64,000 nt of DNA, taken from the sequence record NC_031039.1; one strand, 5' to 3'. Each line of letters opens with the position of its first letter. The stretch's first letter is position 1. The notes beneath the pieces were generated by a model, which did not search any database, was not told the origin of the DNA, and saw only the letters and a list, made by a program, of their open reading frames with translations. The position numbers and the translations under genes are program-made. Of this stretch, positions 476 to 55,975 are shown piece by piece.

Positions 476-3400
476 ATGTCATTTTTTAAAGGTATTCGGA
501 ACATAGAAAGAGTTCAATATGATCTAGTACAATATTGTGACAAGGAATTTGTTCCAAAATTTATAGCAAGTCAAAATATTGATGAAGATAAATTATACGA
601 TACTATTGATTTTAGTTTACAGTTAGCTGAAAAATTACATTTAGATTACAATATGTGTTTTACAATTGCAGTAATGCATGATTTTGGTTATATTGAAGAA
701 GATGAAAATAATTTTAATACATTAATGAGCATAAAAGCAGATCAATTTTTGTTAAGATATTTTGATGGAAGTCAAATGGAGATTATTGAATCTGCTTGTA
801 AAGAACACGATGGTACAAGTAGAGAAACAGGAATATTTACATCTTTATATTCAAAGGTTATTGCAGATGCAGATAGGATGTCAATATTGAGAATTGAAGC
901 TATGATTCGTCATTATTGGAAATTCTATTCTAATCAAAAGGCATTCTCTAATACAGATGAGCGTCCTAATAAACTAACAGATAAAGAAATTTTTGATAAG
1001 ATGTATAGTTTTCTAAAAAAAGAGTATGGTACAATTGTATCAAAAAATAAATTATTGTTAGAAGCATCAAGAGAAATGATGAAAGATGAAATTGAGAATT
1101 CTAATAAAGTATTAAGCTCTGAAGAAGATACAAAAAGAATGGTTCTACATTTAGCTACTTATGGGGAAATCCAAATAAATAATGATGGAACGCTTACCGT
1201 AGAAAAAATAACTAAAGAGCCAATCAGTGAATCAGATCCTTTTGAATTATTTGAAAAAAATATAAAAGAATCAGTAGATGAACAACTACTAGAAGCCACA
1301 CCAAAGAATCTATCAAAGAGACAAAAGGTAGAAGATTTAATATATAAGGTACTTTCAGTTTTAGATGATACTGGAGCTAACTTGAGAAAATATAAAGAGT
1401 TCTTTGGTAAAATGAACGATGAACAATTTGATAGGTATATGAAAAAATTCCTAAAAGATGAAGATGAAAATTTTTATCTTGAAATTTTACCTAATAAAAG
1501 TGAACCTTCATTAAAGCAAATTAAAAAAGCACTAGATATCTTAAAAGTACCAACTGATGAATATGTATATCTTCGACATGATGGTCATAAAAATGATCCT
1601 ATTAGAACTGCATATAAAGTACCTGTTGGTTATATTACAATTAAGCGAGTACAACAAATTCTAAGTAAAAAGAATACTTATTCTCTTGATATTGCACAAA
1701 GAAACATGAAATCGGGTTATAATTGGCTCTCCATTATAGCAATATAATGGCAAACACTCTCCTTAATTTCTGGGATATCCTAATTTTTAGGACAATCAGA
1801 AGCGAATTTGAATAAAAACCTAATATTCAAAACGTTCAACGACTATCCGAAAGCAATCATACGATTGTGAGTAGCGGTGAAATTCCGCAATAGGAGTACG
1901 GCTCAAGCTATTGGAGTGGGTGAGAATCCCTTAAATGGAAACAGGAGGTATCCTTAACGGATAAAGATATAGTCTCGTCTCTATGGTAACATAGAGCAGT
2001 TCATAAGAGAACGCAGTAGATGTAGCGAGTCTACTGGAAGATACGCAAGTTACAGGTAATGACAAAATTGCCAGAATATCTGATATTGAATCATATAGTC
2101 TTGTTGCTATAGGAGCTGATAATGCTTTAAAAGAATTTCTTGGTCCACGAGCTAGATTATTGGTTCGTAATTTCCTTAATTGCTGGAAACTCCTTAGAGC
2201 TTATTAGACCACAACGTGACTGGTAACAGTGGGCGTGAAGGTTATAAGAACTAATAAGATTGGACAATCAGCAGCTAAGCTTTTATTTAATTCTTTAAAA
2301 AAGAGCTGACAACACTAAAACAAAAATATAAATTAGTGTTGGAGGTAAACAATTATGCCTAGAAAGAAAAGCAATGAAAAATTCATGAATGAAGTTAAAG
2401 AATTAGTAGGGGAAGAATATACATTTTTAGAGAGATACGTTCGATCATTGACTAAAATAAAGGTGAAACATAATATTTGTAACAATATATACATGGTTAC
2501 TCCTAATGATTTCTTAAATGGTGGAAAGAGATGTCCTAAGTGTGCCAACAATATTAAAAGGACAAATAAAGAATTTGTTAGTGAAATTAGAAAATTAGTA
2601 GGTAATGAATATACTTTTTTAGATGAGTATATAAATACTGACACACCTATAGGAATTATTCATAATATTTGTAAACATGTATATAAAATTTCCCCTAAAG
2701 AGTTCATTCATAGAAATTCTCGTTGCCCAAAGTGTAATTTCCTTAATAATGAATCTTTCTTTTCTAAAGTTATAAAGAAAACATTAAATGAATTAAATAT
2801 TTATTTTATTCAAGAATATTCGATTAAAGAATTAGGTAAAGGTAAAAAATTTGATTTCTATATACCTTCACTAAATTTAATAATAGAATATGATGGTAGT
2901 CAGCATTTTTATCAAAAATTTAATGATAAAAATGGATTCCTATCACAGATAAAAAGAGATCAAGAAAAGAATGATTTTATAAAGAACAGTGAATACACTT
3001 TGGTTAGAATAAATTACAAAATGAATAAAAATCTAGACATAATAATTAAAGAATTAATAAAAGAAAGTTCAACGACTATCGAAAAATATAATCTATTATT
3101 AATTAGCAAAGATAATATAACAAATTTTAAAGAATATTATAAGAATGCTAATATTAATTATTTTGATTATATTAAGTAGAGTACCCTACAAGTTATTGGT
3201 AGTATACTTCTGGGATGGAGTATAGTATAGAAAATTTCTATATTGGGAAACAGGAAACTTAGAAGATATAGTCTCAACTTCTATAGAAATATAGAGCAGT
3301 TCATTAATACTATTTTTAATAGTATTATGAGAACGCAATGAGTGTAGCGAACTCATTGGAAGATAACTTGGATAACTCTGTAGCAAAGACAGATATGTAT

Positions 3401-3571
3401 AAAAATATTAATTTATATGGATATACTTATCTAAAAGATTTGGGTCATGATATTACTGAAAATCAAACTCTTAATACCATGTATGTATATCTAATGGGTG
3501 CTGGATTAGGGAATGATTTATTAAAAGAGGATACTAATTTAGAAGAACTATTAGATAAAAAAGGAAAGTGA
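476..3571 (+). CDS. Virion RNA polymerase beta-like C-terminal subunit with N-terminal HD-like domain; spliced, exons 476-1717, 2046-2153, 3371-3571 (516 aa)
   Basis: Joined exons read ...AQRNMKSG|QVTGNDKIARISDIESYSLVAIGADNALKEFLGPRA|DNSVAKTDMYKNI, matching the beta C-terminal G-QR-GEME..AL...GA...L.E.L...SD region. Total 1551 nt, in frame. Confidence 0.85.
1718..2045 (+). ncRNA. Group I intron (no ORF), 328 nt
   Basis: Exon ends in U and intron ends in G. Core motifs CTTAATTTCTGG, GGACAATCAG, GTTCAACGACTA, AAGATATAGTC. Removal restores the frame. Confidence 0.9.
2154..3370 (+). mobile_element. Group I intron carrying a homing endonuclease, 1217 nt
   Basis: P1 CGAGCT|...GGTTCG with a U-G pair at the splice site. 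Core motifs AATTGCTGGAAAC, AATCAGCAG, GTTCAACGACTA, AAGATATAGTC. Ends ...TAACTTG. Confidence 0.9.
2355..3179 (+). CDS. Intron-encoded putative homing endonuclease (zinc-ribbon repeats + Vsr/DUF559-like PD-(D/E)xK domain)
   Basis: Two H..C...CPKC repeats; C-terminal FDFYIPSLNLIIEYDGSQHF; GGAGG RBS. Confidence 0.8.
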   Translation: MPRKKSNEKFMNEVKELVGEEYTFLERYVRSLTKIKVKHNICNNIYMVTPNDFLNGGKRCPKCANNIKRTNKEFVSEIRKLVGNEYTFLDEYINTDTPIGIIHNICKHVYKISPKEFIHRNSRCPKCNFLNNESFFSKVIKKTLNELNIYFIQEYSIKELGKGKKFDFYIPSLNLIIEYDGSQHFYQKFNDKNGFLSQIKRDQEKNDFIKNSEYTLVRINYKMNKNLDIIIKELIKESSTTIEKYNLLLISKDNITNFKEYYKNANINYFDYIK

Positions 3572-53748: not shown

Positions 53749-53932
53749 TTAAATCACTCCATTTTTTCTTTTATTTTATTAACTTATTTATAATATATTC
53801 TTTAATCTTTTTTTATTTTTAGAGAATTAATTACAATAAAACATAATTATAATAAAATAAACCCCTCAATAAAAGCAGAACAATATTATTTAATTAAACC
53901 AAGGATATCATTATTTGATATCCTTGGTTATT

Positions 53933-54619
53933 TTATTCTTCATCTTCAGTAAATTCTACTACATCATAAATTTTTCCATTTTCATCTTTTGCAATGTATT
54001 CCCCATTTTCTTCTGTAATCTCTATTTGCAGATCTGGTATTTCAGCATCTTCTATAATATTATAGTCGCCATCCAGACAATAGATATTTTTCTCCATATC
54101 TACTACATATTGATAGTCATTTATTTTTTCCTCTATTACTGTCTCTTCCTTTTCAGAATTGCTTTCATTTTGTTCTTCTTTCAATCTTGCTTCTAATAAT
54201 GCATCTACTTCTTCATCATTTTTCTGTGATCCAGAAATATCTTCAGATTCTTGTTTATTTATAATTTCACTAAATTTTTTATCTTTTTTATTATTAAGAA
54301 TATAATCATGAACACCAGCAACAATTTCTCTAATATCAGAGTTATCGCCACCCTCTTGATTTCTTTGATTTTTAAGTGCAATATCAGCTTCAGTTTTCTT
54401 AGCATTTACGATTTGCTGAATAATAGATATCTTACCAGTTTTAAGTGAAATTAAATTAGAGGTTTGTTTTTCTATAAATGTAAGAGTTCCATTACTGCCA
54501 CTATTTTTAACTTTATCATAATGCTCTTTTGTTTCATCATATAATTCATCGATTTTTTCTAATTCATTCTGGAGAATACTTAATTCTTTAGAAATATCGA
54601 TATTAATATTATCAGCCAT
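53933..54619 (-). CDS. Late hypothetical protein
   Basis: Late promoter at 54648-54659; hairpin terminator downstream. Confidence 0.65.
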   Translation of the reverse strand: MADNINIDISKELSILQNELEKIDELYDETKEHYDKVKNSGSNGTLTFIEKQTSNLISLKTGKISIIQQIVNAKKTEADIALKNQRNQEGGDNSDIREIVAGVHDYILNNKKDKKFSEIINKQESEDISGSQKNDEEVDALLEARLKEEQNESNSEKEETVIEEKINDYQYVVDMEKNIYCLDGDYNIIEDAEIPDLQIEITEENGEYIAKDENGKIYDVVEFTEDEE

Positions 54620-54659
54620 TTTCTATCACTCCTATAATATTTAATACTAATATAATGTT

Positions 54660-55152
54660 CCGTATCAAAAAGATTTTCAAGTATGTATTATTACTGTGAC
54701 GATATCGAAGTAATAGAATTTCGTCATAATTCCTACGGTATCATTGTAGGGTAATTTTCTTAGATATTGTTCATTTACACGGACTCAAACATGTGCCCGT
54801 AGCTGTAACAATAAGAAACACAAAAACTAGTAATAAATAAGGTAATAAAAGAATGGTTGGAAAGACAAAAATATTCATCAGGCTACATACCACGAAAAGT
54901 GTATTGAACGAATGACAATACCCACCTAGTGATTATAGCAAGATCTTTCACCATTCTCCGTATCCTTATAAAGAGAAAAAGGATTTTTTAAAATGGAGAG
55001 GAGAATACGCTATGACAAACACAGTTGAGAAAAATGATTGTCTGGGAAAATTCCCTATTGATGCAGTAAGAATTAGAAGTTCTATTATTTAAACATATAC
55101 GACGACTACTTTTACTATGGGTGGGGGCAACCCCACCCATAGGGCTTTTTTT
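54660..55152 (+). ncRNA. Candidate structured non-coding RNA or long structured leader
   Basis: No ORF over 26 aa, several nested and long-range stems, and a strong terminator at the end. Confidence 0.45.
55115..55152 (+). terminator. Rho-independent terminator
   Basis: 12-bp stem CTATGGGTGGGG-GCAA-CCCCACCCATAG followed by a T7 run. Confidence 0.85.
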
Positions 55153-55201
55153 GGTCAATGTATAAAGATTTCGTCAAAATACTTAATGGGGAGGTTTTTG
55201 A

Positions 55202-55975
55202 TTGAATTGGTTTAAAAGAATGTTTATGGCAAAGGAGAAGGATAAGGAAATTGATTCACTAAGAAGGATGGTTGAACAGAGTAATGAAACTATTAAACTC
55301 ATGGATGGTGTCATAAAAAGATTAGAGGATAATATGACTAAATCCAGACAAGAATCAGCAGCAACTCTTCAGGAAGAAAAAGAATATCAAGATCAAATGA
55401 AATTGGAATCAGAAAGGATGCGGGAATATGAATATATTCAAAATGCTCAAAAAGTTGTTTCTACTTATTTAACTAAATATCTAGATCGTTTTAATCTAAT
55501 TGAAAATCGTTTTTCACTTGCTCATAATATAGATCTTCTTTCTAATTCTGATGACTTAATGTTTAAAATTGTACAAATGATTAAATTGTCTAAGACCAGT
55601 GTTGAATTTGCTACTGTTTGGAACAATCATGTTATAAGAATTAGTATTGATAATGATGAAGATGATGTATATTATAGTATTAATGGTGGAAAAAATCTAA
55701 GTTCCGACATTGTAGGAACCAAATTTCTTACTAAATTTAAGAAGGATATCCAATTAGATATATTGAATTTTCCATGTGTTCAGACAAATAAGATTTATGA
55801 AGTAACTGGTAAGAAGTACAAGTATGTCTTAGCTAACTCAAGAAGAGAATGTTATTATATACTTAAAGATAAAGAGATGAAAACAAAAATAAAAGAAGTT
55901 AGTTTTGTTGAACCAAGTGCATATACACGTTCTATTAGATCTAGACTAGTATATGTAGTACCTCATCAAACTTAA
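55202..55975 (+). CDS. Hypothetical protein
   Basis: GGGGAGG RBS, TTG start, N-terminal coiled coil. Confidence 0.65.
   Translation: MNWFKRMFMAKEKDKEIDSLRRMVEQSNETIKLMDGVIKRLEDNMTKSRQESAATLQEEKEYQDQMKLESERMREYEYIQNAQKVVSTYLTKYLDRFNLIENRFSLAHNIDLLSNSDDLMFKIVQMIKLSKTSVEFATVWNNHVIRISIDNDEDDVYYSINGGKNLSSDIVGTKFLTKFKKDIQLDILNFPCVQTNKIYEVTGKKYKYVLANSRRECYYILKDKEMKTKIKEVSFVEPSAYTRSIRSRLVYVVPHQT

Follow-up and report, generated by a model that had tools for sequence, protein, structure and literature searches.

A conserved fold-back RNA element bracketed by an early promoter and a terminator between genes g142 and g144 of Bacillus jumbo phage AR9

The island, its homologues and its transcription signals

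The genome of the Bacillus jumbo phage AR9 (KU878088) contains an unusually long intergenic region between two divergently oriented genes, g142 and g144, which we analyzed within a stretch of 64 000 nucleotides (nt) from sequence record NC_031039.1 (the window; window coordinates equal AR9 coordinates minus 62000). Genes g142 (53933-54619, - strand) and g144 (55202-55975, + strand, 257 amino acids) flank a gap of 582 nt (54620-55201), while the other annotated gaps in the window do not exceed ~345 nt. The GC content is 33.9%, in comparison with 21.1% in twelve pooled spacers and 28% in the whole window. A first-pass annotation, made from the sequence alone, had described positions 54660-55152 as lying in the largest gap of the window and as less AT-rich than other spacers, both of which are borne out by these figures, and had proposed a structured non-coding island there. 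Synteny, conserved motifs, co-evolving RNA arms and RNA abundance are the observations made on this island, and a self-contained + strand transcription unit of AR9-like (Takahashivirus) jumbo phages describes it best.

The comparison is based on eight divergent homologues, namely AR9 itself, vB_BpuM-BpSp (BpSp) and six metagenome contigs (L021-L026), which were found at syntenic loci by protein searches with g142 and g144. Close relatives of AR9 are of no use for covariation because they are >99% identical. Among the homologues, the flanking proteins are ~37-49% identical in the pairs compared, and gaps of 540-610 nt separate a g142-like gene on the - strand from a g144-like gene on the + strand, the latter always being the next gene after the element. 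All eight share an early promoter, fold-back arms, complementary core blocks, a helix between a Shine-Dalgarno (SD) sequence and an anti-SD sequence, a short open reading frame (ORF) and a terminator.

Outside this group, a g142 relative unaccompanied by g144 or the island occurs in the Listeria phage LPJP1 and in two IMG/VR contigs. When viral contigs were scanned with the two proteins as seeds, g144 gave no match and g142 gave two contigs, both without the island. Since the g142-bearing relatives that lack g144 also lack the island, the two seem to travel together as a cassette. Exact-pattern scans with the conserved blocks in viral, metagenome and genome contig collections returned chance matches only, and no further copies of the island were found in the AR9 genome. 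An Rfam scan of the window at the gathering threshold reported only group I and group II introns, all of them elsewhere (33.4-34.7 and 56.4-59.9 kb), and scans of AR9, L022, L021 and BpSp up to E = 10 produced chance-level matches only. The earlier statement that the island has no group I or II intron hallmark agrees with the lack of any intron model match in it, and the suggested ROOL/GOLLD-like class received no Rfam model match in these four homologues.

Two observations concern the more distant loci. In L018 (LPJP1, 1062-3401), L019 and L020, the g142-like gene lies directly after a polymerase gene or other same-strand genes, and with this gene order the island plus g144 looks like an opposite-strand cassette inserted in the AR9/BpSp lineage. 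On a short contig (L028, 1-462), the g144 relative that diverges most is preceded by an SD-led ORF of 69 codons that runs through a terminator-like hairpin up to the g144 ribosome site.

As described previously, AR9 early promoters follow the consensus AAATATATATTAT-6N-G and late promoters AACA-6N-T(A/G) (Lavysh et al. 2017, PMC5312081). Upstream of the island transcript, positions 54660-54698 (+) match the early consensus, which is recognized by the virion RNA polymerase: an upstream element CCGTATCAAAA (54660-70) is followed by 11 nt, the core TATGTATTAT (54682-91), six bases and G54698, the early start predicted from this motif. The upstream element CGTAT(T/C)AAAA is common to nine published early promoters and is present here too. 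The core is exact in PBS1, Goe21, Internexus, BpSp and all six metagenome homologues, and AR9 alone has one mismatch (A54685G), at a position where PBS1, Goe21 and Internexus have A. The first-pass annotation did not notice that 54660-54697 is promoter DNA. Its proposed pseudoknot at 54689-54726 is not upheld: TATTACT belongs to the promoter and precedes the predicted start, and BpSp has no TCGTCA. On the opposite strand, the published late promoter of g142 (AACA-N6-TA, 54648-54659, with AACA at 54656-54659) has its start at AR9 116648(-), which is window position 54648 (Table S3, PMC5312081), so the island begins with promoter DNA. The g142 late motif is located 49-65 nt upstream of the early start in the 4/4 phages scanned.

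Inside the island, AR9-group phages also carry a late-like motif, AACATGTGCCCG, at 54788-54799 (+), which would start transcription at 54799. No internal + strand late promoter is conserved among the homologues: only the AR9 group has the motif at this place, and the late-like + strand motifs of L021 and L022 sit at other positions.

At its downstream end the island has an intrinsic terminator (55115-55152, +) with a GC-rich stem of 12 bp (8 GC pairs), a 4-nt loop and the tail GGGCTTTTTTT, which includes a run of seven Ts and thus places a U run on the transcribed strand. The stem (55115-55142) is conserved in all homologues with changes on both sides, and the homologous terminators end in GGGCTTTTTTT, or in GGTCTTTTTT in L023. 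The very strong terminator noted in the first pass is therefore a recurrent feature (8/8). It lies ~50 nt before g144; the distance to the g144 ribosome site is a few to ~20 nt in BpSp, L022, L024, L025 and L026 and ~35 nt in AR9 and L021. Neither an early nor a late promoter motif was found between the terminator and this ribosome site.

A separate observation links the terminator to a neighbouring late small RNA. A late promoter (AACA-N6-TA), published as the 'antisense g142' start at 53851, is conserved in 7/7 loci where the region is available (window 53840-53935 (+), L013 ~940-1010, L021 ~1620-1710, L022 ~1612-1700, L023, L025 and L026). The late small RNA is ~75-85 nt long, has a C-rich motif (CCCCUC and similar) that lies in a hairpin loop in three cases, and ends at a bidirectional terminator shared with g142, where an RNA sequencing run of AR9 infection (X2) contains a poly-A-tailed + strand end at ~53935. 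Its pairing with the island gives no diagonal (co-evolving) signal overall. The C-rich motif (53851-53880) is complementary to the G-rich 5' strand of the island terminator (55109-55126), and own pairs score -14.1 kcal/mol versus -12.1 for cross pairs (permutation p 0.017), which is a weak signal. This complementarity suggests that the small RNA may act as an antiterminator in trans.

Fold-back helix, core and short reading frame

The RNA of the island is more stable than its dinucleotide shuffles, with z scores of -6.2 in AR9 and -6.6 in BpSp. In the minimum free energy (MFE) folds of all eight homologues, the first ~70 nt pair with ~60 nt near the 3' end to form a fold-back helix of ~60 bp (P1), which begins at nt 12 in BpSp and at nt 1-3 in the other seven. 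The AR9 5' arm (54700-54766, +) pairs with 55039-55101. The two arms of P1 co-evolve. In an alignment-free 8x8 matrix, duplexes between arms of the same homologue range from -39 to -61 kcal/mol (mean -50.4) in comparison with an off-diagonal mean of -21.5, and the own arm is the best partner in every one of the eight rows and columns; shuffled arms reach only -12 to -19 kcal/mol. When the 5' arms are aligned, changes on both sides occur in 49 of the 58 columns that are paired in at least five of the eight sequences. Covariation among homologues, a check named in the first-pass annotation, is thus found in a helix that this annotation had missed, as it had the early promoter and the SD-preceded ORF. 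Read on the + strand, the P1 helices contain 40 G.U pairs, in comparison with 19 when they are read on the - strand; in 6/8 homologues the + duplex is the better one. Together with the promoter and the T run on the same strand, this bias indicates that the selected molecule is the + strand RNA. Local (metastable) hairpins within the 5' arm show no consistent pattern across the homologues. The CCTAC/GTAGG and GTATTG/CAATAC hairpins proposed earlier are local alternatives in AR9, and in the comparative model their bases are taken by conserved long-range helices.

The central part of the + strand carries further blocks whose complementarity is present in 8/8. Block C (TTGTTCAYTKACAC, 54767-54780) always has block F (GUGUAUUGAACGA, 54899-54911) as its best partner (-11.5 to -13.8 kcal/mol in 8/8), with UUGUUCA..ACAC of the former facing GUGU..UGAACGA of the latter. 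Block D (GUAGCU within GCCCGTAGCT, 54799-54804) is complementary to block F' (GGCUAC, 54881-54886), and both the extension of this helix and its L026 variant involve changes on both sides. The long-range stem described in the first pass, here named P2, is present in AR9 and recurs in all homologues. Its 5' strand (GAATGGT..GAAAGA, or GAAUGG.. in the RNA, 54851-54865) and 3' strand (TCTTTC-ACCATTC, or ..CCAUUC, 54944-54956) close a central domain, with an outer part that is invariant and an inner part that varies together with its partner. Because the C:F and D:F' helices cross P2, the core would be either a pseudoknot or two alternative states.

A third helix, P3, pairs the anti-SD AUUCUCC (54953-54959, +) with the SD region (GGAGAGGAGAAU, 54995-55006, +), in which GGAGAAU (55000-06) is the 3' strand. 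This pairing is available in 8/8 at -10 to -14 kcal/mol, and the SD of the homologues reads GGAG(A)GG(A/G)GA. P2 and P3 share the four bases AUUC, a possible switch point between them. The CGTAT/ATACG stem of the first pass lacks conservation and is incompatible with the anti-SD/SD helix. In the alignment made by the tool itself, core pairing is kept in 81.6% of cells, versus 35-49% when the partners are slid against each other. The predicted core helices rest on conserved complementarity and a few hand-aligned variants (BpSp, L024 and L026), not on strong covariation.

The SD is followed by an ATG and a short ORF, which in AR9 has 26 codons (55012-55092, +) and coincides for the most part with the P1 3' arm. 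In the homologues the ORF has 26-38 codons and is open in 8/8. Five of six peptide pairs tested are no more similar than shuffled sequence, and the peptides differ widely in length and chemistry. The comparison of AR9 with L022 gives a score above that of shuffles. The same conserved bases are read in different frames in BpSp and L022. A change from a glycine to a glutamate codon (GGA to GAA) has its counterpart in a compensatory substitution of the 5' arm, so that the pairing is kept and not the residue. The annotators of BpSp call the + strand mini-ORF gp210, and the ORF peptide has no PHROGs or Pfam match. From these comparisons we conclude that what appears to be kept is an open, SD-preceded frame and not a particular protein. 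The description of the island as structured and non-coding holds for the most part, the element being structured, conserved, bracketed by promoter and terminator and present as abundant RNA with co-evolving arms; the word non-coding has to be qualified in view of the SD-preceded frame.

The AR9 annotation places a different gene here, g143, with 50 amino acids on the - strand (54988-55140), overlapping the terminator hairpin. This gene is not called in PBS1, Goe21 or Internexus, is not conserved and lacks an SD, and is probably a mis-call on the wrong strand, in which case the AR9 annotation should be corrected. A hydrophobic - strand mini-ORF (54771-54893) was rejected together with g143, as neither has an SD and their resemblance comes only from the conserved RNA blocks.

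Transcripts, laboratory lineages and interpretation

The RNA evidence consists of assembled contigs, which carry no strand or end information, from runs of the 2017 AR9 infection study (X1 and X2) and from two food-fermentation metatranscriptomes (X3 and X4). In the two metatranscriptomes, the island is covered 40-300 times more deeply than its flanks: the X3 contig (54716-55412) has a depth of 146 with flanks at 0-3.7, and the X4 contig (54798-55106) has a depth of 589 with flanks at no more than 11. The X3 contig starts directly after an adapter, 18 nt downstream of the predicted start, and this position, known from the contig only, fits a predicted 5' end slightly upstream. In the published expression table, the g143 region reaches 39, 531 and 1799 fragments per kilobase per million (FPKM) at 5, 20 and 40 min, at the first of which its late neighbours g142 and g144 are at 0.8 and 0.4 (PMC5312081). 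Contigs cross the terminator in three runs and show that read-through exists, and a 7-12-fold drop in FPKM from g143 to g144 at 20-40 min in the same table (PMC5312081) fits leaky read-through.

One of the infection runs (X1) also contains an assembled poly-A branch at ~55231-55233 (+), ~30 nt into g144, which suggests that 3' ends of + strand RNA recur beyond the terminator.

The contigs of the infection study differ from the reference by the absence of 112 nt (54656-54767). The joint 54655>54768 is seen in both X1 and X2, and a direct repeat, TGTTC, borders the segment. The skipped bin has just the depth that the 6-nt overlap of the joined contig contributes, so the 112 nt are absent altogether from the contigs. 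Both the early promoter and the 5' arm are lost with the skipped segment, while the new joint rebuilds the late promoter of g142. The skip is most simply explained by a DNA deletion in that AR9 stock; reverse-transcriptase skipping or RNA processing could also have produced it. Splicing was considered and rejected as the first choice: no part of the segment is left in the contigs, its length falls short of a group I intron, no intron model matches it, and the 5-nt direct repeat resembles the situation at a DNA deletion in PBS1. That deletion spans 109 nt (54694-54802) between CTGT repeats; it leaves the promoter in place, whereas the 5' arm, the whole of block C and the greater part of block D are lost. 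With A54685G in the GenBank AR9 sequence, there are three independent lesions in old laboratory lineages, while promoter and 5' arm are intact in Goe21, Internexus and all metagenome homologues. The fold-back is possibly selected against in the laboratory. Although few lineages are involved, the lesions suggest a role of the element in nature and not in the laboratory, perhaps in countering defence systems, in sporulation or in a carrier state. Natural deletion variants (PBS1 and one AR9 stock) are already in hand.

AR9-like phages use their own two polymerases for transcription, and regulation of the host type should therefore not be presumed for the island. We lean, with modest confidence, towards a translation-locked, nuclease-resistant early leader RNA from which terminator read-through supplies g144. 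The virion RNA polymerase would start at the predicted position 54698 and produce an RNA of ~455 nt ending at the terminator (55115-55152). Its 5' ~70 nt would zip to the 3' ~60 nt that form the body of the 26-codon ORF, and the SD of this ORF would be held by the upstream anti-SD, so that P1 and P3 together lock it. Most transcripts would terminate and accumulate as a closed, exonuclease-resistant 'panhandle', and the fraction that reads through would be the only evident messenger for g144, whose dependence on it is a prediction of the model, as are the start site, the lock and the function. As the peptide is not conserved, ribosomes that enter the ORF would matter by translating and thereby unzipping the fold-back and not by their product. 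The island would then yield a conserved RNA of ~450 nt from one of the first promoters to fire, whose zipped ends bury the short ORF. This RNA is a candidate regulator or effector specific to the AR9-like phage group.

Several observations weigh against this leader reading. The published tables of differential RNA sequencing (S2/S3, PMC5312081) list no transcription start site for g143 or g144, and according to the contig data, the published RNA sequencing stock is without the promoter region. The X4 contig starts at 54798 and not near 54698; a polymorphic position that broke the assembly (Internexus G54795T), processing of the RNA or the late-like start at 54799 may account for this. Changes on both sides are seen in only 2 of 34 core pairs in the tool's alignment, a low number that follows from core blocks that hardly vary, and the shuffle control fails to separate observed from shuffled core pairing. 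PBS1 and the AR9 RNA sequencing stock grow without the 5' arm, so the fold-back is dispensable in the laboratory. For either strand of the terminator, the best upstream partners in four homologues are no better than those of shuffled sequence and differ in position; with no conserved antiterminator pairing, regulated read-through is not supported. The regulatory leader named as an option in the first pass is compatible with the fixed place of the island before g144, a gene without an evident promoter of its own. Finally, the frame is open in every homologue, with a chance product of ~8e-4 for four of them, and five of the eight peptides contain an L(G/E)K motif, so its product may be a small protein.

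These points bear on different alternatives. The terminated 455-nt RNA may itself be the product, a stable non-coding RNA that acts in trans as a ribonucleoprotein partner of gp144 or as a decoy or sponge for a host factor, with read-through into g144 being incidental. We regard this as possible and take it seriously, yet doubt it. It accords with the depth of the island relative to its flanks in both metatranscriptomes, a strong terminator for which no antiterminator was found, a highly conserved and possibly pseudoknotted core, the closure of both RNA ends by pairing and the constant company of g144. The conserved SD, ATG and open frame are left unexplained by a purely non-coding role, however, and the RNA has no known target or partner; gp144 has no recognizable family or reliable fold (PHROGs, Pfam, atlas neighbours and AlphaFold), and the contigs that document the abundance give neither strand nor ends. 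Somewhat more doubtful still is a wider form of this proposal, in which the island would represent a new class of large pseudoknotted jumbo-phage RNA with duties beyond those of a leader: the RNA half of a gp144 ribonucleoprotein, a host-factor decoy, or a transcript whose terminator is opened in trans by the late small RNA, switching g144 on late. That the island is an ordinary early mRNA for a protein of 26-38 amino acids with a long structured 5' untranslated region would account for the strong SD, the ATG, the frame open in 8/8, the gp210 call in BpSp, the L(G/E)K motif and the similarity of the AR9 and L022 peptides above shuffles. It is nevertheless unlikely, given that 5/6 peptide pairs do not exceed shuffled sequence, that BpSp and L022 put the same conserved bases in different frames, that length and chemistry of the peptides vary so widely, that the glycine-to-glutamate change was compensated in the 5' arm to keep the pairing, and that PHROGs and Pfam hold no match.

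Two further explanations appear much less probable. The mRNAs of hok (plasmid R1) and AapA1 (Helicobacter) combine long-distance pairing of their 5' and 3' ends with a sequestered SD, by which a short ORF stays untranslated and the RNA is stable. A type I toxin-like module with such an inert, locked toxin mRNA would match the island in its architecture, with 5'-3' pairing, sequestered SD, short ORF and stable transcript. Against this, the peptides are neither hydrophobic nor conserved and have no membrane-like stretch, a scan with the known phage promoter motifs found no conserved - strand promoter inside the element for an antisense antitoxin, and the neighbouring late small RNA does not co-evolve in pairing with the island; we consider such a module very improbable. 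Slightly more improbable yet is selection at the DNA level, in which an inverted repeat would act as a cruciform, serve as an origin or bind a protein, or mark the ends of a small mobile element. Both strands do fold well (z -6.2 and -5.4), and two independent deletions at short direct repeats each removed one arm. The excess of G.U pairs on the + strand (40 vs 19), the + strand promoter and terminator that bracket the structure exactly, the occurrence of the island as abundant RNA and its single copy in the AR9 genome all speak for an RNA instead.

Among known systems, the island shares with hok and AapA1 the 5'-3' pairing and the sequestered SD over a short ORF. It differs in its peptide, which shows neither hydrophobicity nor conservation, and in that no antitoxin RNA in antisense was detected; its RNA is also much longer, has a conserved core, belongs to a lytic jumbo phage and precedes another gene. 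In phage T4, hairpins that sequester ribosome-binding sites in combination with alternative start sites (gene e, soc and I-TevI) likewise let structure gate the translation of a phage ORF depending on where the transcript starts. The T4 hairpins are short and local, whereas the island has a 60-bp fold-back across ~340 nt plus a separate anti-SD helix, and for a second, internal start there is only a hint in AR9 (the late-like motif, 54799), which the other homologues do not share. A structured leader, an unconserved short ORF and an intrinsic terminator just before the gene also occur in leader-peptide attenuators and riboswitch leaders. In contrast to these, the island has no conserved alternative between terminator and antiterminator, its ORF stops 15-22 nt before the stem, it is three to four times longer than usual leaders, and it matches no known aptamer. 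With ROOL and GOLLD it has in common a length of several hundred nt, several domains, carriage by phages and an unknown function, but it has no covariance-model match to them, forms a panhandle with an embedded ORF and occurs in a different phage group. The island lies outside the hok/AapA1 group, the T4 hairpin group, ROOL, GOLLD and any other Rfam family.

Neighbouring genes

Both gp142 and gp144 fall into PHROGs families of unknown function, have no Pfam match above the cut-off and have no useful neighbours in the protein atlas; the AlphaFold model obtained in this function check is poor, with a predicted local distance difference test (pLDDT) score of 62.6. On the far side of g142, an early-like promoter, AAGAATATATTAT, at ~53790-53812 (-) faces g141 and is conserved in four phages. 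It is the same variant as the published promoter of g083. Gene g141 is expressed early (310 FPKM at 5 min) with no promoter listed for it, and its early expression would be explained by this early-like promoter.

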